Part shown: piece after piece, positions 9,081-43,816 of the stretch
Position numbering within the stretch: position 1 is the first letter of the stretch
Layout of the letters: each line of letters opens with the position of its first letter
DNA from: Macrostomum lignano
Lineage: Eukaryota
Assembly (NCBI GenBank): GCA_002269645.1
Contig: NIVC01004504.1
Span: forward strand, 1 to 43,816
Reading direction: 5' to 3'
Length of the DNA stretch: 43,816 nucleotides
Translations under genes and position numbers: made by a program
Notes under the pieces: generated by a model
What the model was told of the DNA's origin: nothing
Databases searched by the model: none
What the model saw: only the letters and a program-made list of their open reading frames with translations

Positions 9081-10668
9081 TTGAGGGAATGAGTTGAGGG
9101 AATGAGTTGAGGGAATGATTGGAAGAATCAAGATGGAGTGGGAAGAATCAGGATGGAGTGGGAAGAATCAGGATGGGATGGAAAGAATCAGGATGGGTGG
9201 GAAGAATCAGGATGGGGTGGGAAGAGTCAGGATGGGATGGGAAGAGTCAGGATGGGATGGGAAGAATCAGGATGGGATGGAAAGAGTCAGGATGGGATGG
9301 GAAGAATCAGGATGGAGTGGGAAGAGTCAGGATGGGTCGGGAAGAGTCAGGATGGGATGGGAAGAGTCAGGATGGGGTGGTAAGAGTCAGGATGGGATGA
9401 GAAGAATCAGGATGGGATGGGAAGAATCAGGATGGGATGGGAAGAATCAGGATGGGATGGGAAGAATCAGGATGGGGTGGGAAGAGTCAGGATGGGATGG
9501 GAAGAGTCAGGATGGGATGGGAAGAGTCAGGATGGGATGAGAAGAATCAGGATGGGATGGGAAGAGTCAGGATGGGATGGGAAGAATCAGGATGGGATGG
9601 GAAGAATCAGGATGGGGTGGGAAGAGTCAGGATGGGATGGGAAGAATCAGGATGGGATGGGAAGAGTCAGGATGGGGTGGGAAGAATCAGGATGGGATGG
9701 GAAGAATCAGGATGGGGTGGTAAGAGTCAGGATGGGATGGGAAGAATCAGGATGGGGTGGGAAGAGTCAGGATGGGATGGGAAGAATCAGGATGGGATGG
9801 GAAGAATCAGGATGGGATGGGAAGAGTCAGGATGGGATGAGAAGAATCAGGATGGGATGGGAAGAATCAGGATGGGATGGGAAGAATCAGGATGGGATGG
9901 GAAGAGTCAGGATGGGGTGGTAAGAGTCAGGATGGGATGAGAAGAATCAGGATGGGATGGGAAGAGTCAGGATGGGGTGGTAAGAGTCAGGATGGGATGG
10001 GAAGAATCAGGATGGGATGAGAAGAGTCAGGATGGGGTGGGAAGAGAAGAGTCAGGATGGGGTGGGAAGAGTCAGGATGGGATGGGAAGAGTCAGGATGG
10101 GATGAGAAGAATCAGGATGGGATGGGAAGAGTCAGGATGGGGTGGGAAGAGTCAGGATGGGATGGGAAGAATCAGGATGGGATGAGAAGAGTCAGGATGG
10201 GGTGAGAAGAGAAGAGTCAGGATGGGGTGAGAAGAGTCAGGATGGGGTGGGAAGAATCAGGATGGGATGGGAAGAGTCAGGATGGGGTGGTAAGAGTCAG
10301 GATGGGGTGGGAAGAATCAGGATGGGATGGGAAGAATCAGGATGGGATGGGAAGAGTCAGGATGGGGTGGTAAGAGTCAGGATGGGGTGGTAAGAGTCAG
10401 GATGGGGTGGTAAGAGTCAGGATGGGTTGGGAAGAGTCAGGATGGGATGGGAAGAGTCAGGATGGGGTGGTAAGAGTCAGGATGAGATGGGAAGAATCAG
10501 GATGGGATGGGAAGAATCAGGATGGGGTGGGAAGAGTCAGGATGGGGTGGTAAGAGTCAGGATGGGATGGGAAGACTCAGGATGGGATGGGAAGAAGCAG
10601 GATGGGGTGGGAAGAGTCAGGATGGGGTGGGAAGAATCAGGATGGGGTGGGAAGAATCAGGATGGGGT
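9081..10668 (+). repeat. G-rich 20-bp minisatellite (GGAAGA[A/G]TCAGGATGGG[A/G]TG)n, preceded by three copies of a 13-bp unit
   Basis: 20-bp periodicity visible over ~1.55 kb from 9120; TTGAGGGAATGAG units at 9081, 9094 and 9107. Confidence 0.97.
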
Positions 10669-11555: not shown

Positions 11556-20116
<8,561 letters not shown>

Positions 20117-21223: not shown

Positions 21224-22397
<1,174 letters not shown>

Positions 22398-22937
22398 ATA
22401 TAAATAGCTTGCCATGCCTTTCTTTAAAGACTTTCTTCTTTATTCTCGTAATTTTTTTTCTGGAAAATCTATCTATCAAAAAATTGCAGACCTCGATAAA
22501 AAGAAAAGCATCGAGATCTAGAAAAGAGGGGATAGAGACAGACGGCAGACAGGTAAAAGCTCTCACATCTGCAGAAGTCCAATAGGGTGTGGCTATGAGT
22601 ACCGCGGGGGGAATAGGAAGTCTCTGGATTCAGTCTGGTTTAGTCTTGGCTTCCGTTGCTTTGGGACTGGGGCGTTACCTTTCTATTGATTTCGTTTCTC
22701 TTCATATTTTTGGTGCAACGCTCACTGATGTCTGTGATTACATAGGAAATGCGCAGGTAATTCAAGAATTCATATTATTTACTTCGAGTTTTTAAAAGCC
22801 TTTAATATAATAATGTTAGATTCAGCTATTCGTATCTATAGAGAGGTTCAGAGAGATAAATTGGGGAAATTAGACGAAGATAGACATTGAAGAAGAGAGT
22901 GTGGAGAAAAGAGGGCTAGAAAGATAGAGGACGAGCA

Positions 22938-25009
22938 AGAGAGAGAGTGAGGAAGAGAGATTGAGGAAGAGAGAGGGTGAGGAAGATGAGAGGGTGAGGA
23001 AGAGAGAGGGTGAGGAAGAGAGAGGGTGAGGAAGAGAGAGGGTGAGGAAGAGAGAGGGTGAGGAAGAGAGAGGGTGAGGAAGAGAGAGGGTGAGGAAGAG
23101 AGAGGGTGAGGAAGAGAGAGGGTTAGGAAGAGAGAGGGCGAGGAAGAGAGAGGGTGAGGAAGAGAGAGGGTGAGGAATAGAGAGGGTTAGGAAGAGAGAG
23201 GGCGAGGAAGAGAGAGGGTGAGGAAGAGAGAGGGTGAGGAAGAGAGAGGGTTAGGAAGAGAGAGGGCGAGGAAGAGAGAGGGCGAGGAAGAGAGAGGGTG
23301 AGGAAGATAGAGGGTGAGGAAGAGAGAGAGTGAGGAAGAGAGATTGAGGAAGAGAGAGGGTGAGGAATAGAGAGGGTTAGGAAGAGAGAGGGCGAGGAAG
23401 AGAGAGGGCGAGGAAGAGAGAGGGTGAGGAATAGAGAGGGTTAGGAAGAGAGAGGGTGAGGAAGAGAGAGAGTGAGGAAGAGAGAGGGTGAGGAATAGAG
23501 AGGGTTAGGAAGAGAGAGGGTGAGGAAGAGAGAGAGTGAGGAAGAGAGAGGGTGAGGAATAGAGAGGGTGAGGAAGAGAGAGAGTGAGGAAGAGAGATTG
23601 AGGAAGAGAGAGGGTGAGGAATAGAGAGGGTGAGGAATAGAGAGGGTTAGGAAGAGAGAGGGTGAGGAAGAGAGAGAGTGAGGAAGAGAGAGGGTGAGGA
23701 AGAGAGAGGGTGAGGAAGAGAGAGGGTGAGGAAGAGAGAGGGTGAGGAAGAGAGAGGGTGAGGAAGAGAGAGGGTGAGGAAGAGAGAGAGTGAGGAAGAG
23801 AGAGGGTGAGGAAGAGAGAGGGTGAGGAAGAGAGAGGGTGAGGAAGAGAGAGGGTGAGGAATAGAGAGGGTGAGGAAGAGAGAGGGTGAGGAAGAGAGAG
23901 AGGGTGAGGAAGAGAGAGAGTGAGGAAGAGAGAGAGTGAGAAAGAGAGAGGGTGAGGAAGAGAGAGGGTGAGGAAGAGAGAGGGTGAGGAAGAGAGAGGG
24001 TGAGGAAGAGAGAGGGTGAGGAATAGAGAGGGTGAGGAAGAGAGAGGGTGAGGAAGAGAGAGAGGGTGAGGAAGAGAGAGAGTGAGGAATAGAGAGGGTG
24101 AGGAAGAGAGAGGGTGAGGAATAGAGAGGGTGAGGAAGAGAGAGGGTGAGGAATAGAGAGGGTTAGGAAGAGAGAGGGCGAGGAAGAGAGAGGGCGAGGA
24201 AGAGAGAGGGTGAGGAATAGAGAGGGTTAGGAAGAGAGAGGGTGAGGAAGAGAGAGAGTGAGGAAGAGAGAGGGTGAGGAATAGAGAGGGTGAGGAAGAG
24301 AGAGAGTGAGGAAGAGAGATTGAGGAAAAGAGAGGGCGAGGAAGGGAGAGGGTGAGGAATAGAGAGGGTTAGGAAGAGAGAGGGTGAGGAAGAGAGAGAG
24401 TGAGGAAGAGAGAGGGTGAGGAAGAGAGAGGGTGAGGAAGAGAGAGGGTGAGGAAGAGAGAGGGTGAGGAAGAGAGAGGGTGAGGAAGAGAGAGGGTGAG
24501 GAAGAGAGAGAGTGAGGAAGAGAGAGGGTGAGGAAGAGAGAGGGTGAGGAAGAGAGAGGGTGAGGAAGAGAGAGAGTGAGGAAGAGAGAGGGTGAGGAAG
24601 AGAGAGGGTGAGGAAGAGAGAGGGTGAGGAAGAGAGAGGGTGAGGAATAGAGAGGGTTAGGAAGAGAGAGGGTGAGGAAGAGAGAGAGGGTGAGGAAGAG
24701 AGAGAGTGAGGAAGAGAGAGAGTGAGGAAGAGAGAGGGTGAGGAAGAGAGAGGGTGAGGAAGAGAGAGGGTGAGGAAGAGAGAGGGTGAGGAAGAGAGAG
24801 GGTGAGGAAGAGAGAGGGTGAGGAATAGAGAGGGTGAGGAAGAGAGAGGGTGAGGAAGAGAGAGAGGGTGAGGAAGAGAGAGAGTGAGGAATAGAGAGGG
24901 TGAGGAAGAGAGAGGGTGAGGAAGAGAGAGGGTGAGGAAGAGAGAGGGTGAGGAAGAGAGAGGGTGAGGAAGAGAGAGGGTGAGGAAGAGAGAAGGTGAG
25001 GAAGAGAGA
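22938..25009 (+). repeat. Polypurine 16-bp minisatellite (GAGGGTGAGGAAGAGA)n, ~2.07 kb
   Basis: T positions at 22995, 23011 and 23027 give period 16; variants GGGTTAGG, GGGCGAGG, GGAATAGA and extra GA. Confidence 0.97.
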
Positions 25010-29928: not shown

Positions 29929-31053
29929 TCAAGACAACGGAAATCCCTGCACGTCAACCAGCTCCTGGGCGAATTCCAGCTGTTGCAGCAGAGCTTCCAC
30001 ATCCTGACACGCAGACAGAGAAGCAGCCGCCTTCTCTAGCAGCGCCATCCAGTACAGCTGGTACTCATTCTCCTTGGAAGAGCACTTGTGCAGTAGGTCG
30101 GCCGACAGGGCGCCGGGTCTCAGTCCGACCGCCGCCATCGCCTGCTTGGACCGTTTGCCCGACGAGTACAGCCGCTTGCTGAGGTCGATTCGTCGAACCG
30201 AGTCAGTCAGCCGACGCAGGTGACGAATAACGGCGAGTTTTTGCATGGCCAGGGCCGGCTCCTCAGTCTGCTGCAGGTCGCGCATTCGTTGGCTGAGACT
30301 TTTGAAACAATTGACCATCACGAACTGCTTGCTGACCTCCCACTGCTTGGCCAAGCCTTTGCCAGCAGCTGTTTCGGCTTTGGCGGCGGTGAAGGCGCCG
30401 GCTCCGCCGGTCAGAATGGCTTCGGCAGTATCCTCCTGGGACTGGGACGCCGACTTGCTGCTGCCCTGCAAACCCTGCTGAATGGCTGCATCAATGTGAG
30501 GCTGCTGGTGCTGGCTGTGGCCCTTCCGGCGCCGAGACCTGCAGGCCAGGGCAGCGGTGGATGTCGCCGGCTGCTGGTGATGCGCGCTCTTGGCACAGAA
30601 CATCAGCATCTGGTCGATGAGTGACGAGTGCGGAGCCAGAGAAGTTGAATTGGCGTCGCCTAAACCAGTCTGAGCGTCTTCTTCGTCAGACACCGAGAAG
30701 GTATTCGTGTTGACGTCCTCGTTGGTGTCCTTAATGATATTACCGTCGGCCGATTGCAGGGGGTTCTTTTCGGCGGTGTGTTCAATGACGTCTCCGCCGG
30801 CCACTGCGCCGCCCTGATGGCGTCGTCGATGAGACGAGGAGCCGTGCCGCTGGGCCCGGCAGGCGTCGCGCTGATGATGCTGATGGTGGTGATGATGATG
30901 ATGCTTCGAGTGATGCACCGACGATCTTCTCGTAGCGTTGTCGCCAATGGAGTTGGAGCAGGATTGCTCGGGCTGCTGCTGATGGTGCTTTTGATGCCGA
31001 TGCTGGCGCGAGCGACCAGGCTGCACCTGCTGCGAATCAATTGATCTGATCAT
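29929..31053 (-). CDS. Intronless His/Gln-rich protein with a predicted helical C-terminal region, function unknown
   Basis: ATG at 31053, 374 aa, TGA at 29931-29929; GC-rich island with sharp AT-rich flanks. Contains HHSKHHHHHHQHHQ and Q tracts; the C-terminal ~140 aa are ordinary complexity (WEVSKQFVMVNCFKSL...LLQQLEFAQELVDV). Confidence 0.78.
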   Translation of the reverse strand: MIRSIDSQQVQPGRSRQHRHQKHHQQQPEQSCSNSIGDNATRRSSVHHSKHHHHHHHQHHQRDACRAQRHGSSSHRRRHQGGAVAGGDVIEHTAEKNPLQSADGNIIKDTNEDVNTNTFSVSDEEDAQTGLGDANSTSLAPHSSLIDQMLMFCAKSAHHQQPATSTAALACRSRRRKGHSQHQQPHIDAAIQQGLQGSSKSASQSQEDTAEAILTGGAGAFTAAKAETAAGKGLAKQWEVSKQFVMVNCFKSLSQRMRDLQQTEEPALAMQKLAVIRHLRRLTDSVRRIDLSKRLYSSGKRSKQAMAAVGLRPGALSADLLHKCSSKENEYQLYWMALLEKAAASLSACQDVEALLQQLEFAQELVDVQGFPLS

Positions 31054-31559
31054 TTTCAAAGTCTTCAGTTTTTACTGATTTGAAAAGCGCTGCAGCGGAG
31101 CAGGCAATTTATATAAGAGATCGTTTTATTTAGTGCACATTCATGCTAGCTTGAAATACGATTTTTTGCCATAGAGTGCTGCATCGACATGTAAATTTAA
31201 TAAATGAAATTACGCCCTTGACCTGCTGCAAGGGAGCACTAATTCTTGTACGAGCTAAGTTGATGTTTGTCTTTGTTATGCTGTTAGGTACATGTACGTA
31301 CATCAACATGCATGTACTGGTAAAATAGGCCCACAGCTGATTGCATAAGTTGCTACTGACGCTTCGTTGAGTGTTGACGGACTGCTTGATTAGCACATAC
31401 ATCATGATATATGTACGTGTTTTTTAAGACCCTCGTGACTCGTACTTTATAATTGCATATTTGCATTGAATTTTTGTTTCATTACCTGATACATGCACAT
31501 TGCACATTATATATACATGTAAATAAACTGCAGTCACTGCCTGCCTTCTTTGGGAGGCA

Positions 31560-33386: not shown

Positions 33387-34772
33387 TTTCCCTTAAAATC
33401 AATTAATACGAGTAAAATGTACTTAACGGTGAATAAAATACACAGTTTATCAACAAAACCCACCGTATTAGGTGTTAACTATTAAACAAAGGGTTACAGC
33501 GCGTGTACGTTTTTAGTTCGACAGAGCAAAATATAGTAACATTTTTCATATCGTATTTTAAGAATCTTTGTTAGCAGTAGTGAGTAGCGAAAAGCAAAGC
33601 ATCTTTTTAAGCAAAGAGGCAAATTTTTAAATTAGAAAAAATTGTTTGATTATGTTTATTACATAGTTGGGTGCTTCTATAATTACTCTAAGGGCCCTAA
33701 AGTCGTATTCGAGGCGTGCTAGAAGAGTCTAAGAAAGAAAGACCATCTGTAAGAGTTTAAGTTAGAGCTGTAATATTTAGCAATTATAAAAACTCTATTT
33801 AGTCTACTTTAGTCAGTAGAAAGTTAAGCGCTAACACAACGACTTTTGGACGACTTTTTTTGTGATTCTTACCAGTGAGCTGCTCAATTTCATACTCAAC
33901 TGACAATGTTAATGTTATCTCTAAACTGTACTAGCCATCTACAATAAAAAATTGCTAATTTTTTGGAGGAGGGTGGATATATTCAGTCTTCTCATTGGTT
34001 CAAAAACTACTCATTAAAAATCTAAGTTTAAAATTCGGTCTTAATATTTTGCATTCACTCTACTGTTTTTGTATTCAAATTCTTAGTCATATTATGTATT
34101 TTTCAGATCCTTTTGTACACCATTTATTGTGAATGTGTTTTTCAATTTAATTTGACCTAATTCTAACTCATTAATTTCAATTGGTAATGGTAGTCACTTA
34201 TTGAAAAAATGTTCCATTTTTTGGGGCGAGTGTCGCGACTTTCCTAGTCATTTCTTTAGTTCACCTTCACTTGTCTCTGTTTACTCTGTTTTCGCTCTCT
34301 CTGTCTGCTCAATCTTGTTATTCTTATCTCTCTCTCCCTTGCTGCCTTCTGATTGGCTCCCCATTCTCGCCTTTATCTTCAGTCGCGCACTTCACCCCTC
34401 TCCTTATTATCTGGAGTCAACCCCCCTCTAAATTAGTCATATAAATACACTTGTTTGGGCCCTGCGCCCACTTACTGGCTGGCTTATCTTAGATTCAATT
34501 TAACTCTAATTTAGTGCTAGCTTTTTTAGTCTTAGTCATTTTCTCTACAGCAATGTCTCTTTAGCGGGCACCTAGGAACCTAGGAGTTGGGCAACCCCAT
34601 TCTCCCACGGAACTGCTGATAGTTGCAGGTTTATTAGCAAAACTGATTTCACTTACGGTGAGAGCACAAAAACCGGGAAGGTGTTTTATAAAAAATCTAA
34701 ATTCCAAACAGAAACTACACGATGTAATTAAAAAAACACTAACAGCTGGTGTCAAATCAATCAATCAATCAA

Positions 34773-35210
34773 TCAACAGGGATTAAGCTCAAATTCGCGC
34801 AATATTTTCAAGCCTTCCAAACAGCCGAAACGTTTCAGCGTTTCGGCCAGCTGCGACACTGTGAGGCCCCGATCTCGAATCAAGTTTAGCAGGCCTTGGT
34901 GCAACAAGTCGGCAGGATTTGTGTACTGGCGCTGCAGCAACTCCAAGTTGACAGCTGAGATGCCCAGATTCTCCAAAACCGGCCGATATTTGCTGCTCAA
35001 ATCTTGAGAATTGCACAAACGTCGGGCCAGACCGGTTGTTGCAACAATTTCAGCATAGGAACGTTGCAACAATTCCACAATGTCACTCTGGTGCCCCGCT
35101 GTCACATGCTGGGACACTCTGACGGAACCGCTGCCACCGGTGGGGCGGTAAAATGACACCATTTCACCTCCAACAGTTCCAATGCTCACGGTGAAGGCTC
35201 CACTTCTTCG
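34773..35210 (-). other. Terminal exon encoding a death-domain-like module
   Basis: LARRLCNSQDLSSKYRPVLENLGISAVNLELLQRQYTNPADLLHQGLLNLIRDRGLTVSQLAETLKRFGCLEGLKIL fits the death-domain pattern (xxLxxxLG+....I/L; T+xxLxxxLxxxG). The usual Trp residues are replaced by Tyr/Leu. Confidence 0.7.
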
Positions 35211-38200
35211 CTGAGGGGTGTGTGTGTGTGTGTGTGTGTGCGGTCAGTGACAATTTGACCATCAGTGCCAATTCGACTATTAGCGACAATTAGACTGTCA
35301 GTGACAAAGTGAATACCAGTAAGAAATTGACTATCAATGACAATTAGACTCTGTCAGTGACAATTAGACTCTGTTAGTGACAATTTGGCTGACAGGGACA
35401 ATTTGACCATCAGTGCCAATTCGACTATTAGCGACAATTAGACTGTCAGTGACATAGTGAATACCAGTAAGAAATTGAATATCAGTGACAATTAGACACT
35501 GTCAGTGACAATTTGACTAACAGTGACAATTTGACTATCAGTGACAATAGGATTGTCAGTGACAATTTAACTGACAGGGACAATTTGACTATTAGGGACA
35601 AATTAAATATCAGTGACAAATTTAATATCAGTGACAATTAGACACTGTCAGTGACAATTTGACTATCAGCGACAATTAGATTGTCAGTGACAATTTAACT
35701 GACAGGGACAATTTGACTATCAGTGACAAATTGAATATCAGTGACAGTTTGACTATCAGTGACAATTAGACTTTGTCAGTGTCAATTTGACAATTAGTGA
35801 CAATTTGACTATCAGTGACAATTTGACCATCAGTGACAATTTGACCATCAGTGACAATTTGACTATCAGTGACAATTTGAATCAGTGACAATATAACAGT
35901 AAAAGCTTACCGATGATTGGCTGGATGAAACAGACTGGTCAACATTACCAGAGAGCTTTTCAGCCTCAGACACAGGTCGACCCTCAAACTGCATGGAAAC
36001 AAGAAAGCATCGCAAGAATCATAGTATATCTTTGCACAAAAATGATTCATAATTCAGCAACTTACGTCTGGTTGATTAGACTGATCCATCGCATTGTCCA
36101 GCTGAAATTTAAACATTTGTAGGACTGGACGTGTTTAAGCTTTCGATGTATATCAGCTTTAGTAAATAGACTTTGTAATAATTTTATGGATATTTAACAC
36201 CTGTAGGATTGGGTGGGATTTTAACACCTGTGGGGATCGGATGGGATTTTAACACCTATGGGGATCGGATGGAATTTTAAAACCTGTGAAATCGGATGGG
36301 ATTTTAACACCCTGTGGGGATCGGATGGGATTTTAACACATGTGAAATCGGATGGGATTTTAACACCTGTGGCCTGTGGGGATTGGATGGGATTTTAACA
36401 CCTGCGGGGATCGGATGGGATTTTAACACCTGTGGGGATCGGATGGGATTTCTGATACCATCACTGAGCCAACAACCCAAACAAACCTCCAGAACACTGA
36501 GCTCCTCTTCAACCGGACCAAGTGACACAGTCCTCGCTCGGACCTCAGCCGACGGAATGGTGTCAGCCGGTGGCAGCTCGCCCAGCTCATTCAGCACTCG
36601 GTTTCTCTCCCGCTCCATCTGGGTCAGGCTGCACCTTCTCCACAGGGCGCTGATTTCGCTGAAAGTTGCCCGTTGCTCCGGCACCTGACAGGCCATTTTC
36701 TCCACAACAAGCTTAGTAATTTTTTGCAACTGTTCAAGATCTGCATCCCAGTTTCTCACAGGAATCTTATTAAAGAAACTATCGTCAACTAAGAGTTGAA
36801 AATCTCGAATGTGCTGTCCGATGCGTACTCTGCCTTTGAATGCTTCGATACGGTCCCCAATGACCTGACGAACGGACAGCTGACCGAATGCTTCGACTAC
36901 GAACACAGCGTAGAGATACCTGTCGCCGAATATGTCCGGCTGTCTCAGTGGATCGTCGTAAGTTTCTGGCAAGCGACGTTCGACTCCACGCAGTCGCTCA
37001 AATGCTAACGTGTTCTGCGTGGCGATTGACTCCACTGTGCGTTTGGACAGGCCGAAATCCGCGATCTGGCGTGGTTGGGAGAGCGGCGCCTGTCTGTGCT
37101 GTCATTAGCATCTGACATTCTAGTCTGTGCTGTCGTTAGCATCTGACATTCTGGTCTGTGCTGTCGTTAGCATCTGACATTCTAGTCTGTGCTGTCGTTA
37201 GCATCTGACATTCTGGTCTGTGCTGTCGTTAGCATCTGACATTCTAGTCTGTGCTGTCATTAGCATCTGACATTCTAGTCTGTGCTGTCGTTAGCATCTG
37301 ACATTCTAGTCTGTGCTGTCATTAGCATCTGACATTCTAGTCTCTGATGTCATTAGCATCTGACATTCTAGTCTCTGATGTCATTAGCATCTGACATTCT
37401 AGTCTGTGCTGTCGTTAGCATCTGACATTCTGGTCTGTGCTGTCGTTAGCATCTGACATTCTAGTCTGTGCTGTCATTAGCATCTGACATTCTAGTCTGT
37501 GCTGTCGTTAGCATCTGACATTCTAGTCTGTACTGTCATTAGCATCTGACATTCTAGTCTGTGCTGTCGTTAGCATCTGACATTCTAGTCTGTGCTGTCA
37601 TTAACATCTGACATTCTAGTCTCTGATGTCATTAGCATCTGACATTCCAGTCTGTGCTGTCATTAACATCTGACATTCTAGTCTCTGATGTCATTAGCAT
37701 CTGACATTCTAGTCTGTGCTGTCATTAACATCTGACATTCTAGTCTCTGATGTCATTAGCATCTGACATTCCAGTCTGTGCTGTCATTAACATCTGACAT
37801 TCTAGTCTCTGATGTCATTAGCATCTGACATTCTAGTCTGTGCTGTCATTAACATCTGACATTCTAGTCTCTGATGTCATTAGCATCTGACATTCTAGTA
37901 GTCTGTGCTGTCATTAGCATCTGACATTCTAGTCTGTGCTGTCGTTAGCATTTGACATTCTAGTCTGTGCTGTCATTAACATCTGACATTCTAGTCTGTG
38001 CTGTCATTAGCATCTGACATTCTAGTCTGTGCTGTCATTAGCATCTGACATTCTAGTCTGTGCTGTCATTAGCATTTGACATTCTAGTCTCTGCTGTCAT
38101 TAGCATCTGACATTCTAGTCTGTGCTGTCATTAGCATCTGACATTCTAGTCTGTGCTGTCATTAGCATTTGACATTCTAGTCTGTGCTGTCATTAGCATC

Positions 38201-38566
38201 TGACATTCTAGTCTGTGCTGTCATTAGCATCTGACATTCTAGTCTGTGCTGTCATTAGCATCTGACTCATAAACAAATAACGCTACTATTAGTAGGCAAA
38301 AACTAAATAAATAAAAAACTAAGTATTAAGTCAAGTTTCAACCAGACCTTGGCATTCAGCTGGTCATCAATCAGGACGTTGTCAACGGCCAAGTCTCGAT
38401 GAAGAATTCCGCCACCGTCCCCGTTCTGCAGGAATTCGAACCCGTCAGACACCTGCAGCATCCAAGATGTCACAAGCCAGGGGTGGCGGGTCCTGCCGCC
38501 GCCCATCTGCTGCTGGTGTTAGGAGAGTTTGGGTGGTACATGCACTCAATGTGATAGTCGATAGCC

Positions 38567-38627
<61 letters not shown>

Positions 38628-38628
38628 T

Positions 38629-38695
<67 letters not shown>

Positions 38696-41600
38696 CTAAG
38701 ACACTAAGACAGACAGACACTAAGACAGACAGACACTAAGACAGAGAGGCATAAAGACAGGCAGACACTAAGACAGACAGACACTAAGACAGAGAGGCAT
38801 AAAGACAGGCAGACACTAAGACAGACAGACACTAAGACAGACAGGCTCTAAGACAGACAGACACTAAGACAGACAGACACTAAGACAGACAGACACTAAG
38901 ACAGACAGACACTAAGACAGACAGACACTAAGACAGACAGGCTCTAAGACAGACAGACACTAAGACAGACAGACACTAAGACAGACAGACACTAAGACAG
39001 ACAGACACTAAGACAGACAGACACTACATGTATGACAGACAGACAGACAGACAGACACTAAGACAGACAGACACTAAGACAGACAGACAGACAGACACTA
39101 AGACAGGCAGACACTAAGACAGACAGACACTAAGACAGACAGACACTAAGACAGACAGACACTAAGACAGACAGACACTAAGACAGACAGACACTAAGAC
39201 AGACAGACACTAAGATAGACAGACACTAAGACAGACAGACACTAAGACAGACAGACACTAAGACAGACAGACACTAAGACAGACAGACACTAAGACAGAC
39301 AGACACTAAGACAGACAGACACTAAGACAGACAGACACTAAGACAGACAGACACTATATTCTCAATCAAAAGCAACGCAGACAGTTTCAAGCACATACCA
39401 TGGTGGACAGCCGCTTGGAGAACACCCTCAGACTGCCGTGCTTGCAGTACTCCATGGCGTACCCGACCAGTTTTAACACTTCGTGACAGTAGATGTACAG
39501 AATTTTAATGAAAGCGCCGCGCTTCTTGCCCAGGTCGTGCATGTACTTGATCTCGTGCACCAGGTGCTTCACTACCCTGAATTTGAATAAACGGTAAGTA
39601 CATGCGATACATGTGTAGAAATCAGTACTGAATTAGTCTTCAGTTCTAGAAATTAACTATTCTCAAAACTTTTCTCCCTGCTGTCTTCATTACTTTACGT
39701 GAGAACCTGTCTCTCTGCTCTTCCCCATTCCTTGAGAATCTGTCTCTCTGCTCTTCCCCATTCCTTGAGAACCTGCCTCTCTGCTCTTCCCATTCCTTGA
39801 GAATCTGTCTCTCTGTTCTTCCCAGTCCTTGAGAATCTGTCTCTCTGCTCTTCCCCAGTCCTTGAGAATCTGTCTCTCTGCTCTTCTCCATTCCTTGAGA
39901 ATCTGTCTCTCTGCTCTTCCCCAGTCCTTGAGAATCTGCCTCTCTGCTCTTCCCCAGTCCTTGAGAATCTGCCTCTCTGCTCTTCCCAGTCCTTGAGAAT
40001 CTGTCTCTCTGCTCTTCCCCATTCCTTGAGAATCTGTCTCTCTGTTCTTCCCCAGTCCTTGAGAATCTGTCTCTCTGCTCTTCCCCAGTCCTTGAGAATC
40101 TGTCTCTCTGCTCTTCCCCATTCCTTGAGAATCTGTCTCTCTGCTCTTCCCAGTCCTTGAGAATCTGTCTCTCTGCTCTTCCCCAGTCCTTGAGAATCTG
40201 TCTCTCTGCTCTTCCCCATTCCTTGAGAATCTGTCTCTCTGCTCTTCCCCAGTCCTTGAGAATCTGTCTCTCTGCTCTTCCCCATTCCTTGAGAATCTGT
40301 CTCTCTGCTCTTCCCCACTCCTTGAGAATCTGTCTCTCTGCTCTTCCCCATTCCTTGAGAATCTGTCTCTCTGTTCTTCCCCAGTCCTTGAGAATCTGTC
40401 TCTCTGCTCTTCCCCACTCCTTGAGAATCTGTCTCTCTGCTCTTCCCCACTCCTTGAGAATTTGTCTCTCTGCTCTTCCCCATTCCTTGAGAATCTGTCT
40501 CTCTGCTCTTCCCCACTCCTTGAGAATCTGTCTCTCTGCTCTTCCCACTCCTTGAGAATCTGTCTCTCTGCTCTTCCCATTCCTTGAGAATCTGTCTCTC
40601 TGCTCTTCCCCAGTCCTTGAGAATCTGTCTCTCTGCTCTTCCCCAGTCCTTGAGAATCTGTCTCTCTGCTCTTCCCCAGTCCTTGAGAATCTGTCTCTCT
40701 GCTCTTCCCCATTCCTTGAGAATCTGTCTCTCTGCTCTTCTCCATTCCTTGAGAATCTGTCTCTCTGCTCTTCCCCATTCCTTGAGAACATGTCTCTCTG
40801 CTCTTTCCCTAGAATGCAATGCCTACATTTCAAGCTGAACTCCATAAACTAGTCGGCCTTATCAATTTACCAGTCCTTCTTGCTCATATCCTGCTGTTCA
40901 TCCAGTTTAAATATTTTCAGAGCCATAGGCGCGTCATTTGGCGCGCTTTTCAAGTTGCACCGATGACAAACAGCAAAAGAGCCTTTGCCTGAAAAATGAA
41001 TACGGGGCATAGAAAACACCCGGTAACCGAAATATGATTTAATAAATGAATATGATTAATACTGGAGCTCGATAATAACAACTTACCAATTAAACTTTCT
41101 TCGGGAAATTCTACTTCAGTGTTCCACAAAACTTCTGGCGCTTTCAAATCTGGAGCAATCTGTAAAACAACATCATGGTTAATTTAGAAGAAGAGTACAC
41201 CATGACTCGACAATTGATCAGCCAAAAAATGAACTCACAGATTCATTGAGCTCTTGTCGAACAAGCCTCAAAACTTCCTGACGCGCCCTCTCCATCTTGT
41301 CAGGGCTGCAGGCGCGCCAAATGTCTTTAACTTCACTAAATGAAGCCTCTGTTCCGGGATGTGATGCGACATTATCTGTACCACTTGCAAGATTGCCTGT
41401 TTGAGCCTGTTTAGGTCTCCATCAGACGAGGCCACTCCAACGAAACAATTAGAATTTAATAATTGTTGAAAATAATCCACATGTTTGCCCGACCGCAATA
41501 GGTCAGTAAACTGTTGGACATTGTCACTTATCTGCTCACGGATTGACAGCTCAGTGAAGGCTTCTACAACCAGCAGTCCGTACAGATACCTGTCGCTAAA

Positions 41601-43487
41601 CTGGTCAGGCTGTCGGATCGGATCTGAGACAGTCTCCGGCAGCTGCTTATCAATGCCTCGCTTTTGCTCAAAGTCCAAAGTTTGTGGCGATAAATTTGCT
41701 TCCGTGAGTTTCTTTGAGAGGCCGAAATCCGCGATCTGGGATTAGTCAGATAAATCAGTTCTGCTATAAATTACAGATTACATGTGTTTTACATTACTGA
41801 AGGATACATGGATGCAGATCAAACCAACTCAGTGACACACATGCGGATGCAGATCAAACCAACTCAGTGACACACATGCGGATGCAGATCAAACCAACTC
41901 AGTGACACACATGCGGATGCAGATCAAACCAACTCAGTGACACATGCAGATGCAGATCAAACCAACTCAGTGACACATGCAGATGCAGATCAAACCAACT
42001 CAGTGACACACATGCAGATGCAGATCGAACCAACTCAGTGACACACATGCAGATGCAGATCAAACCAACTCATTCAATCCGGACACACAGGAATGCAGAC
42101 AACGCACAATAACGTGTGAGTATGTTAATAGGTGTTAAGATGGATTATAAGCGAAAAAGTGTCAAAGCGAACACACCTTGATATCGAGCTGGTCATTGAT
42201 TAGCACACTATCCACAGACAGATCTCTATGTATAATCGCTCCTTTTGGTCGAGTTTGCAAATAGTGGAAAGCATCTGCAATCTGGAGCATCCAGCTGGTT
42301 TTCAACCACGGATGATACAGACTATCTAGATTGCTCTGGAAATAAATGAAAAGAATGAATTATTGAAATCAATCAGCATTCAGCAATGAATAGAAAAATA
42401 CTTCTATTTCAACTTATAGTTACCAATTTTGACAGATGCAAACTAAAGGACCGAATACTGCCCAGCCGACAGTATTCCATAGTAAAGCCGGAAAGTTTAG
42501 TATCCCGACTGTACAAATGGTAAACGCTAATAAACTGTTCGCGTTCCTGACGCAGATCGTTTAGCAGCGCGATCTCTTTACTAAGTGGTTGACCAGCCTG
42601 GAGAAGAGAAATAAAAATGTTGACAACAATAATTTATATTGGAAGCTAAACTTTCCAATGGAAGACATTTTATGCAGGTCTTAACGAGGATATGTATTTT
42701 CTTTAGTTTTTTTTGTCAAAAGGGTTATGTTATTTGTAAGATCAAAATACAGGGAGTGTCATAGGCCCCAAGGGCTGGATTCCAAGTGCAGTCGCATTAA
42801 TTTCGGTGCACCTTTATTTAACGATAAATAAAGTCAGGACGCTATACACTCGTGCGTGTGCCTGTGTGTATGACTGCGTACGTATCGGGGAGTCGATGGA
42901 ATGGGCAGTAACCAGTAATGCCTTTTGACGGTTGTGTGACAATGTCGCTTAAAGTGCGCCATGATATAGCAAAAATAATTGCTATATCATACCCCAAGTT
43001 CCGTTTTCATTAACTATTTGTTTAGATAATTTTTAAAGAGAAATATTGAAGCAAACAAATATTAAAAACTTTCAGAAACAACTAAATAAAACTCACCACT
43101 GCGTTCGACTGGCGTCGTTAAATTCGAATAACTTGACGGCTAACGTTTTCATTGTAGGATCATTTTTGAGCCAGCATCGATGCACGCTTGCAATGCTGCC
43201 TTTGCCTAACAGATAGGATTAAAACAGATAAAAAATAGTTTGTTTTAATTAGCACGTGGATTAGCAATCTATTATTTTATGCAGGTACACAACTGATATT
43301 TCGGTCTTTAATAGTAGATTGCAGTGAAAAATTCTTAGACCATTTCACTTTTGTCCTAGCTTTAGAAAAAAATGACAAAGAAGTTCATTAAAAGTTCACA
43401 CAAAGTACGCATAAAAAAGTTCTTACCTATCAACGAATTGCTGGGATATATAACGTCATTTTGCGAAGTGTTCTTTAATTTTGCCAT
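34773..43487 (-). CDS. Tandem kinase - kinase - death domain protein (TKL/RIPK-like), 12 exons, ~874 aa if two 1-nt deletions are repaired
   Basis: Exons (minus): 43487-43427 (ATG in CCGCCGATGG), 43205-43097, 42597-42424 (1 nt short), 42335-42177, 41735-41239 (1 nt short), 41159-41087, 40988-40871, 39576-39399, 38506-38348, 37065-36487, 35988-35911, 35210-34773. All junctions GT-AG. Two full sets of kinase motifs followed by a death-domain-like C-terminus. Confidence 0.85.
35219..35890 (+). repeat. (GT)n followed by a degenerate ~18-21-bp repeat (TCAGTGACAATTTGACTA), intronic
   Basis: Recurrent CAGTGACAATT core filling intron 35211-35910. Confidence 0.9.
36190..36452 (+). repeat. ~28-bp minisatellite (GGGATTTTAACACCTGTGGGGATCGGAT)n, intronic
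   Basis: About 9 degenerate copies in intron 35989-36486. Confidence 0.9.
37090..38266 (+). repeat. 31-bp minisatellite (TCTGTGCTGTCATTAGCATCTGACATTCTAG)n, intronic
   Basis: Period 31 (37093/37124); fills intron 37066-38347. Confidence 0.97.
38566..39355 (+). repeat. (AGAC)n grading into a 16-bp unit (AGACAGACAGACACTA)n, intronic
   Basis: Direct periodicity in intron 38507-39398. Confidence 0.97.
39700..40808 (+). repeat. 33/32-bp pyrimidine-rich minisatellite (CCTTGAGAATCTGTCTCTCTGCTCTTCCCCATT)n, intronic
   Basis: Direct periodicity in intron 39577-40870; source of the 11-aa-repeat ORFs. Confidence 0.97.
41239..43487 (-). other. Kinase unit 1 (probable pseudokinase) of the tandem kinase gene
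   Basis: IG|KGSIASV, LAVK, KEI, MEYCRLGS, SWMLQIADAFHYL, HRDLSVDSVL (Asn replaced by Ser), IADFG, QLPET, DRYLYG, PEQR. Frameshifts near 42577-42579 and 41343-41345. Confidence 0.85.
41809..42073 (+). repeat. 35/33-bp minisatellite (GATGCAGATCAAACCAACTCAGTGACACACATGCG)n, intronic
   Basis: About 7.5 copies starting at 41811, 41846, 41881 etc. in intron 41736-42176. Confidence 0.95.
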
Positions 43488-43816
43488 CGGCGGTAAAAGT
43501 TTTGTTATACATAAAAGGGAAAAGCACAATTAACGAAATTACGAGCTCGTAGTATTGCCGACTAGGAATCACACAGCTAAGGCCATTTTCTAATTTTAGA
43601 TCATAAACTGATCACATTTCGGAGGATTTAAAGCCAATAATAAAGGGAAAAACAAGTTATGTCCTAACAGCCTCTAGCACTAGGAAAGATTCGGAACTTT
43701 TTCAGAGTTTTTAACAACAGCTGAACATATCTGCAATTCTAGAACATATGTACAAACAAATAATCATGCAAATAAAGATAGTATTTAAAAATATTAGTAA
43801 TGTATATTACTAATAA

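Follow-up and report, generated by a model that had tools for sequence, protein, structure and literature searches.

A Macrostomum lignano gene encoding two tandem kinase domains and a probable C-terminal death domain

Innate immunity and regulated cell death depend on kinases that carry a death domain, such as RIPK1, IRAK/Pelle and DAPK1, as central switches. Tandem-kinase proteins, in which two kinase domains share one polypeptide, are a growing class of plant immune receptors. The locus described here appears to combine both designs. It lies on the minus strand of a window of 43,816 nucleotides (nt), the complete contig NIVC01004504.1 of the Mlig_3_7 assembly (GCA_002269645.1) of Macrostomum lignano, a free-living flatworm that serves as a transgenesis-capable regeneration model (PMC5730564). 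The locus is one expressed M. lignano gene with 13 coding exons and a product of about 887 residues, comprising two paralogous kinase units (unit 1 and unit 2), a linker and a helical module that is probably a death domain. For this structure and domain content taken together we estimate a probability of about 70%.

Both ends of the coding sequence proposed in the first-pass annotation, the ATG at 43487 and the stop codon at 34775-34773 on the minus strand, can be read directly in the sequence. That annotation counted 12 exons; the RNA-based model has 13, five in each kinase unit, two small linker exons and the last exon. Sister contigs carrying the same gene are labelled L001 to L004 where they must be told apart. 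In the order of transcription the elements of the gene are:

43510..43512, minus strand: acceptor position, 22 nt before the unit 1 ATG; TTTATG in the window
43427..43487, minus strand: unit 1 exon 1, 61 nt; ATG at 43485-43487; encodes MAKLKNTSQNDVIYPSNSLI-G; phase 1 donor GTAAGA
43097..43205, minus strand: unit 1 exon 2, 109 nt; G-loop GKGSIASV and VAIK-type Lys (LAVK); ends tg/GTGAGT within a Trp codon, phase 2
42424..42597, minus strand: unit 1 exon 3, 174 nt in the window and 175 nt in the sisters; alpha-C Glu (LVKEIALL) and hinge (MEYCRLGS)
42577..42579, minus strand: frameshift site 1; AAA in the window, AAAA in L001, L002 and L004; stop at 42563-42561
42177..42335, minus strand: unit 1 exon 4, 159 nt; catalytic loop IIHRDLSVDS, with Ser at the usual Asn position
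41239..41735, minus strand: unit 1 exon 5, 497 nt in the window and 498 nt in the sisters; IADFG, LPE, DRYLYG, PEQRASFSEV
41346..41347, minus strand: frameshift site 2; GG in the window, GGG in L001, L002 and L004; stop at 41270-41268
41160..41238, minus strand: intron between the units, 79 nt; GTGAGT...TTTTACAG; phase 0 on both sides
41087..41159, minus strand: unit 2 exon 1, 73 nt; homologous to unit 1 exon 1
40871..40988, minus strand: unit 2 exon 2, 118 nt; G-loop GKGSFAVC and Lys in MALK; ends tg/GTAAAT within a Trp codon
39399..39576, minus strand: unit 2 exon 3, 178 nt; alpha-C Glu (LVHEIKYM) and hinge
38348..38509, minus strand: unit 2 exon 4, 162 nt as annotated (STMQMGGG); catalytic loop ILHRDLAVDN
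36487..37065, minus strand: unit 2 exon 5, 579 nt; IADFG, C-lobe through PEQRATFSEI, and tail
36066..36101, minus strand: linker exon L1, 36 nt, LDNAMDQSNQPD, phase 0/0
35911..35988, minus strand: linker exon L2, 78 nt, FEGRPVSEAEKLSGNVDQSVSSSQSS, phase 0/0
34773..35210, minus strand: last coding exon, 145 codons plus TGA
34794..35012, minus strand: death-domain-like helical module, covering the Pfam PF00531 match
34630..34635, minus strand: AATAAA signal, about 140 nt past the stop codon

The two five-exon units are interrupted at matching places, as had been noted: in phase 1 at IG/KG, in phase 2 within a Trp codon (tg/g), and in phase 0 both before the HRD exon and at K/IADFG, all seen in the sequence. 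The internal duplication that this pattern was taken to indicate is borne out by 47% identity over 321 residues (BLASTP E 6e-106, computed after conceptual repair of the reading frame). An HRD exon of 159 nt in both units is correct for unit 1; in unit 2 it results only from use of the last of three tandem CAG acceptors, and the RNA-based models have 162 or 165 nt there. These NAGNAG-type acceptors (38507-38515) lie just before the unit 2 HRD exon, which would measure 159 nt from 38506 and 165 nt from 38512, and public models vary at this place by none, one or two Gln (STM-MGGG, STMQMGGG, STMQQMGGG). Exon 1 of unit 1 is identical in four sister loci, and exon 5 of this unit reaches the GTGAGT donor as ...QELNES, with no stop codon in the corrected frame. 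Linker exon L1 is included in the RNA-based models P0001, P0032 and P0034 and is missing from the UniProt models P0002 and P0003. The whole linker between kinase 2 and the C-terminal helical module spans about 75 residues.

The gene had been described as hidden, but it is already annotated. The conceptually spliced protein matches M. lignano proteins at 99% identity. The GenBank model on the window contig is PAA47285.1 (P0032, BOX15_Mlig009930g5), of 572 residues (coding sequence 41295-34773, minus strand), while models of the same gene on sister contigs have 894 (PAA47243.1 and PAA65386.1), 915 (PAA85129.1) and 672 residues (PAA51010.1). UniProt entries A0A1I8GF15 and A0A1I8JDI5, from an older assembly, represent the same gene or near-identical copies, and the transcript clusters are Mlig009930 and Mlig005512. 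The database names of these proteins go no further than 'hypothetical protein' or 'Protein kinase domain-containing protein', and their precomputed domain lists hold kinase families and no Death domain; standard domain annotation misses this divergent module. The gene model is thus public. Unrecorded, both in the domain lists and in the literature searched, are the death-domain-like tail and hence the order kinase, kinase, death domain. The first-pass annotation did not recognise such an architecture in animals, and we likewise found none among the detectable homologues.

Both kinase domains are secure (Pfam E 1e-19 to 1e-23 per unit and 9e-44 for the full protein), as first proposed. Against PF00069 and PF07714, with cut-offs of 31.7 and 23.1 bits, unit 1 scores 80.9 and 81.5 bits and unit 2 scores 75.4 and 70.7 bits. 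Each unit keeps the VAIK Lys (LAVK in unit 1, MALK in unit 2), the alpha-C Glu (KEIALL and HEIKYM), the HRD Asp and the DFG Asp, catalytic positions confirmed by alignment to MAP3K2, CTR1 and EGFR. Each also carries a GxGxxA-type G-loop, a PE motif, the subdomain IX Asp (DRYLYG) and a TK/TKL-style PE.RA.F.E. A built-in regulatory pseudokinase had been suggested. If a pseudokinase is defined by loss of at least one of the VAIK Lys, HRD Asp and DFG Asp, neither unit qualifies and the suggestion is not supported. The catalytic-loop Asn is present in unit 2 (HRDLAVDN); unit 1 has Ser instead in all copies (HRDLSVDS).

Outside five M. lignano proteins, the best matches of the kinases stand at 22-24% identity and include plant RLK/Pelle, oomycete TKL and Tritrichomonas proteins. 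Searches of the PDB with a single sequence or a four-member profile gave E-values of 1e-8 to 1e-20 and a mixed set of top matches (EGFR, PLK4, FGFR, DDR2, SOBIR1, Mer, RIPK1/2, JAK2, MAP3K2 and CTR1), with MAP3K2, CTR1 and JAK2 at the top for unit 1. Because of this mixed list and the isolation of the family, we class it, as judged from sequence, as a Macrostomum-only, TK/TKL-like and otherwise unclassified kinase family that is not specifically RIPK or IRAK.

The last module likely adopts a death-domain fold. Pfam Death (PF00531) is its best match and covers profile positions 9-84 of 86, at 18.3 bits (E 0.0025) in the 110-residue module and 16.5 bits (E 0.0097) in a 183-residue tail segment. 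Single-sequence AlphaFold2 models of the full 145-residue exon and of the trimmed 110-residue module both have six to seven helices. In Foldseek searches of the PDB, death domains make up most of the matches (about 30 of 46) and represent more than ten proteins (Fas/FADD, TNFR1, PIDD/RAIDD, DR3, MALT1, ankyrins, p84, MyD88/IRAK4/IRAK2, Pelle/Tube and TRADD), with template modelling (TM) scores of 0.45-0.59 and probabilities up to 0.91; CARD, DED and PYD structures were absent from the matches. The death-domain-like module of the first-pass annotation is weakly supported, as its score does not reach the Pfam gathering cut-off of 22.6 bits.

Several observations weigh against our reading, most of them at this module. 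They are (i) the sub-threshold Pfam score, nearly equalled by that of an unrelated family, DprA_WH (E 0.006); (ii) the low confidence of the models, whose predicted local distance difference test scores are 56 (145 residues) and 61 (110 residues); (iii) the lack of any Foldseek match with E below 0.5, every value being at least 0.6; (iv) the lack of a homologue of the last exon outside the gene's own cluster in a HMMER search of 1.84 billion representatives; (v) the mixed kinase matches listed above, from which no function can be assigned to the family; (vi) RNA support for the junction between the units that is second-hand, coming through annotation rather than reads; and (vii) the absence of the Mlig transcript identifiers, and with them of any expression pattern or phenotype, from the main text of the literature and the supplementary files checked. 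In addition, a PDB sequence search with the tail returned only noise and no death domain. The first four points and this search would suit a module of another kind, either a different small helical bundle or a domain peculiar to the lineage, the protein then being a tandem kinase with an orphan tail. We consider this unlikely, though it deserves to be taken seriously. Death is nonetheless the top Pfam match along almost the entire profile, and two separate models retrieve mainly death domains rather than CARD, DED, PYD or winged helices, with TM scores up to 0.5-0.6 and six or seven helices of the right lengths. By eye, YRPVLENLGIS...NPADLLHQGLLNLIRDRG.LTVSQLAETLKRFG also fits what we take to be the usual death-domain pattern (W..LAR.LG / ..L..W....G / AT...L..AL), and we count this against the orphan-tail alternative. 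One apparent homologue of the last exon, P0035, was rejected as a 3,881-residue coiled-coil repeat protein whose match, between its 11 repeats and 34 residues, is due to chance.

The stretch AFTVSIGTVGGEMVSFY (35148-35198), which lies between kinase 2 and the module, is predicted, with low confidence, to form a beta-hairpin in the position that the RHIM occupies in RIPK1. It contains VSIG, to be compared with the RHIM core I/V-Q-I/V-G. No Pfam RHIM match was obtained in the linker-plus-tail segment at E up to 1, and we treat the putative hairpin as a lead only.

The 79-nt intron with its strong GTGAGT donor that was proposed to link the units is present in the sequence and spliced in the models. 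The RNA-seq-guided GenBank models on the window and on four sister contigs all join 41239 to 41159, which agrees with the single gene first proposed, and the peptide across this junction, ...QELNES/IAP(D/E)(L/V)KAPEV..., is present in P0001, P0032, P0033 and P0034. The UniProt models P0002 and P0003, which are independent and come from an older assembly, have the same junction. The Mlig_3_7 annotation was built from RNA-seq assemblies (StringTie/TACO plus a mapped de novo transcriptome) and not ab initio (PMC5730564). TBONE cut its transcripts at experimentally mapped spliced-leader and poly(A) sites, and open reading frames (ORFs) were called by TransDecoder (PMC5730564). Exon 1 of unit 2 (41087-41159) has no in-frame ATG. 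Two kinase domains share one polypeptide, both in the single ORF of L001 to L003 and in the joined RNA-based models, as the term tandem kinase implies.

The same stretch could instead separate an operon-like pair of genes making two proteins. The unit 1 mRNA would end in or just after the 79 nt (…NESVSSFFG, then stop), unit 2 would be trans-spliced at 41159, and the start codon of the unit 2 plus death-domain-like protein would come from the spliced leader. In favour of this, M. lignano has a spliced leader with ATG at its end and an acceptor motif of [T/C]TNCAG, and the spacing in its operons is most often close to 100 bp (PMC8629364). At 41159 the acceptor reads TTACAG, a leader join would give ATG/ATT GCT in frame, and unit 2 exon 1 begins exactly at the position of the unit 1 ATG. 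Retention of the intron would end unit 1 seven codons on (SVSSFFG, then stop). Against this stands the strong in-frame GTGAGT donor 79 nt upstream of the acceptor, trans-splicing being predominant only where there is no upstream cis donor (PMC8629364). Moreover, a pipeline that cuts at mapped trans-splice sites left the units joined on five contigs, neither AATAAA nor ATTAAA was found within the 79 nt, and the donor and acceptor are conserved in every copy. We regard two separate proteins as improbable. Given the strong cis donor and the absence of a TBONE cut, trans-splicing at 41159 is possible as a minor isoform rather than as the main product.

The exon pieces had been described as joining into one reading frame. 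This is not so in the window contig, where two 1-nt deletions break unit 1. With the paralogous acceptor at 42597, the deletion in the A-run at 42577-42579 leads to the in-frame stop at 42563-42561. The deletion in the G-run at 41346-41347 leads to the stop at 41270-41268, upstream of the donor of the 79-nt intron, even with an alternative acceptor. An acceptor at 42580, with Cys in place of Trp, would mend the frame at the first site; it was rejected as it drops six conserved residues and is used by no model. Small corrective introns in unit 1 were also rejected, given the gapless homology to unit 2 across both sites and the one extra base in the sister contigs. L001, L002 and L003 have an uninterrupted ORF of 886 codons, and none of their splice sites differs.

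L004 (NIVC01003518.1) is the same haplotype as the window, with zero substitutions in all 13 exons. Across 10,795 aligned columns the two contigs differ by 4 mismatches and 20 indels, 18 of which are single-base changes of homopolymer length, in either contig. Their exons differ by indels only, two in the window and one in L004; the latter, in unit 2, truncates the annotated protein P0033. The Mlig_3_7 assembly was made from PacBio reads with Canu and Pilon polishing and is known to be highly redundant (PMC5730564). From these sequence comparisons we read the two frameshifts as homopolymer consensus errors of the long-read assembly, not biology. The GenBank coding sequence on the window starts only at the ATG at 41295 (MERARQ...) because of these two errors upstream.

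A genuine pseudogene would also account for a broken unit 1, which in the window copy would be a decayed remnant, so that the locus makes only the 572-residue protein of one kinase and the death-domain-like module. It could be pointed out that unit 1 of this contig has both frameshifts while unit 2 is free of them, that the GenBank coding sequence begins at 41295, that the acceptor upstream of the unit 1 ATG differs in the window too, and that the ratio of nonsynonymous to synonymous differences between copies (pN/pS) is somewhat higher in unit 1. We think this very unlikely. L004 matches the window at every exon base, without either deletion, yet has a 1-nt indel of its own in unit 2; indels between the two contigs outnumber substitutions 5 to 1, nearly all being single-base homopolymer changes; homology to unit 2 runs on undisturbed, in the shifted frame, past both frameshift points; and the assembly is redundant and PacBio-derived.

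The comparison of copies gives a pN/pS of 0.16-0.31 for unit 1 and 0.08-0.14 for unit 2, values that, with small numbers, fit purifying selection on both units. The last exon has zero substitutions in 435 nt among three distinct haplotypes. In the kinase exons about 3% of the synonymous sites vary, and the expectation for the last exon is about 3 synonymous differences. Its invariance could be due to chance, gene conversion or constraint at the nucleotide level.

That the joined model is a chimeric transcript artefact, arising from mis-assembled reads of near-identical tandem or duplicated kinase genes, can be set aside as extremely improbable: the genome is highly redundant, three paralogous units adjoin (a further one, unit 0, lying upstream of unit 1), the UniProt models P0002 and P0003 are patchy, with skipped exons and unit 0 merged, and the P0034 model begins in a unit 0 exon in the wrong frame, but the units are only 42-48% identical in protein, too diverged for reads to cross-map, the junction consists of canonical, conserved, in-frame sites 79 nt apart on one strand of one contig, and unit 2 has no start codon of its own.

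Unit 0, the third of these paralogous kinase units and likewise of five exons, lies upstream, about 0.9 kb from the unit 1 ATG and beyond the high-coordinate end of the window. It was located in three sister contigs:

6208-9294 in L001: unit 0
6211-9303 in L004: unit 0
9509-12345 in L003: unit 0

Unit 0 is 42% identical to unit 2 and is divided into exons in the same way, with an HxD exon of 159 nt and a split Trp codon. Its catalytic loop reads HLD (non-RD), with the Asp kept. The annotation treats it as a gene of its own, with 341 or 383 residues, but P0002 and P0003 merge it with the fused gene. A tail of 75 residues, a double stop codon and an ATTAAA signal belong to unit 0 itself; unit 1 has none of these. 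At the position 22 nt upstream of the unit 1 ATG, L001 (about 9996-9998), L003 and L004 have a TTTCAG acceptor and L002 has GCATG; the variation may reflect a real allele or an error of assembly. The unit 1 gene models in sister contigs start at this TTTCAG, and L003 also has a cis splice that leads from a unit 0 exon to the same acceptor, out of frame. Since the unit 1 mRNA begins there, the arrangement of unit 0 and the fused gene resembles an operon-type pair.

The three units form a tandem array derived from a single ancestral kinase gene of five exons, and the fused gene is the downstream part of this array; no further members of the kinase family were found elsewhere in the window. Exon 1 of unit 2 opens with ATT GCT (41157-41159) where unit 1 has ATG GCA (43485-43487). 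The ancestor may have been a tandem array of three genes, the downstream members using 5' acceptors. A donor site would then have arisen just before the stop codon of unit 1 and captured the 5' acceptor of unit 2, fusing the two. On this comparison of exon ends, the fusion probably came about through a new donor that turned the 5' acceptor of unit 2, at its former start codon, into an ordinary intron acceptor.

Six introns of the kinase gene are each largely filled by a different minisatellite, and the lengths of these arrays vary between sister contigs. The 33-mer array produces long spurious ORFs in all three frames. The intron minisatellites are:

35244-35892: 18-mer x36
36188-36451: 28-mer x9
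37092-38266: 31-mer x38
38567-39356: 16-mer x50
39700-40809: 33-mer x34
41811-42072: 35-mer x8

Outside the kinase gene, features of the window include an ORF about 3.7 kb downstream of it, with a counterpart in the sister contigs, and several satellite arrays:

29929-31059, minus strand: single-exon GC-rich ORF of 376 residues (annotated gene 374 residues) with His/Gln runs
9117-10666: satellite array, 20-mer x77
12015-13180: satellite array, 32-mer x36
15989-16583: satellite array, 41-mer family
21224-22401: satellite array, (ATCT)x295
22910-25009: satellite array, 16-mer x131

No Pfam domain was found in the ORF and no tRNAs in the window. The large satellite arrays explain why the composition profile of the window shows extreme GC and AT skews.

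We tentatively propose, by analogy with RIPK1 and IRAK/Pelle, that the death-domain-like module would mediate homotypic assembly, either with itself or with another death-domain protein. Assembly could concentrate the kinases and so favour trans-phosphorylation and downstream signalling. Unit 2, which has the full catalytic set, might be the main catalyst, with unit 1, having lost the Mg-binding Asn, as a weaker or regulatory partner. Taken on its own, this mechanism as a whole is less likely than not, and distinctly less probable than the architecture. The innate-immune or cell-death role first suggested is likewise conjectural. Platyhelminth tumour necrosis factor (TNF) receptors are predicted to have death domains and M. 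lignano has TNF ligands (PMC7519573), making the receptors candidate partners in principle. FADD and CRADD were not found in the flatworm phylum, and M. lignano is reported to have a caspase with a kinase-like pro-domain (PMC11463336). A bolder proposal would be a flatworm-built, RIPK1-like hub of cell death or immunity, in which two competent kinases, a hairpin at the RHIM place and a divergent death domain came together through a converted trans-splice acceptor and the first kinase acts as sensor or decoy, as in plant tandem-kinase receptors; we regard this as a long shot.

If our reading is true, a kinase tandem with a death domain in an animal would represent an independent evolutionary experiment, notable in a phylum reported to have lost FADD and CRADD (PMC11463336). 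The gene could point to an unrecognised flatworm death-domain pathway. It also illustrates cleanly how neighbouring genes of a tandem array can fuse, perhaps by way of an operon-type acceptor. The practical lesson is that the annotation of the window copy is truncated only through two assembly errors.

RIPK1 shares the order of N-terminal kinase, linker and C-terminal death domain, and the kinase domains of RIPK1 and RIPK2 are among the better PDB sequence matches (E 1e-8 to 1e-12). Yet RIPK1 has one kinase domain where the flatworm protein has two, and carries a RHIM that has no Pfam match in the flatworm linker; the flatworm death domain is moreover highly divergent. The RIPK kinase match ranks level with or below EGFR, PLK4, FGFR, DDR2, SOBIR1 and Mer, a ranking that does not support orthology. 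IRAK/Pelle proteins likewise unite a TKL-type kinase with a death domain that assembles signalling oligomers, and plant RLK/Pelle proteins are among the best non-flatworm matches, at only about 22-23% identity. In IRAK/Pelle, however, the kinase is single and the death domain N-terminal, whereas the flatworm module is C-terminal and only 20 residues precede the unit 1 G-loop. On these features the protein belongs to neither the RIPK nor the IRAK/Pelle family.

Plant tandem-kinase proteins (WTK1/Yr15, RPG1) and the JH2-JH1 pair of JAKs resemble the flatworm protein in having two kinase-fold domains that arose by duplication or fusion. One of the two is usually a pseudokinase there, whereas both flatworm units keep the Lys, Glu, HRD Asp and DFG Asp, and the sequences show no specific relationship. 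To our knowledge, none of the plant tandem-kinase proteins or JAKs has a death domain. The paralogues P0004 and P0005 come from other M. lignano loci and are named 'Protein kinase domain-containing protein' in UniProt. They belong to the same lineage-specific kinase family (43% identity, sharing WMLQ, KIADFGL, QPD...DRYLYG and PE.RA.F) and also have a second kinase, but in them the family kinase is followed by ankyrin repeats and then by an unrelated second kinase, with no death-domain-like tail. With the sub-threshold death-domain evidence as the main caveat, the gene is a lineage-restricted orphan.

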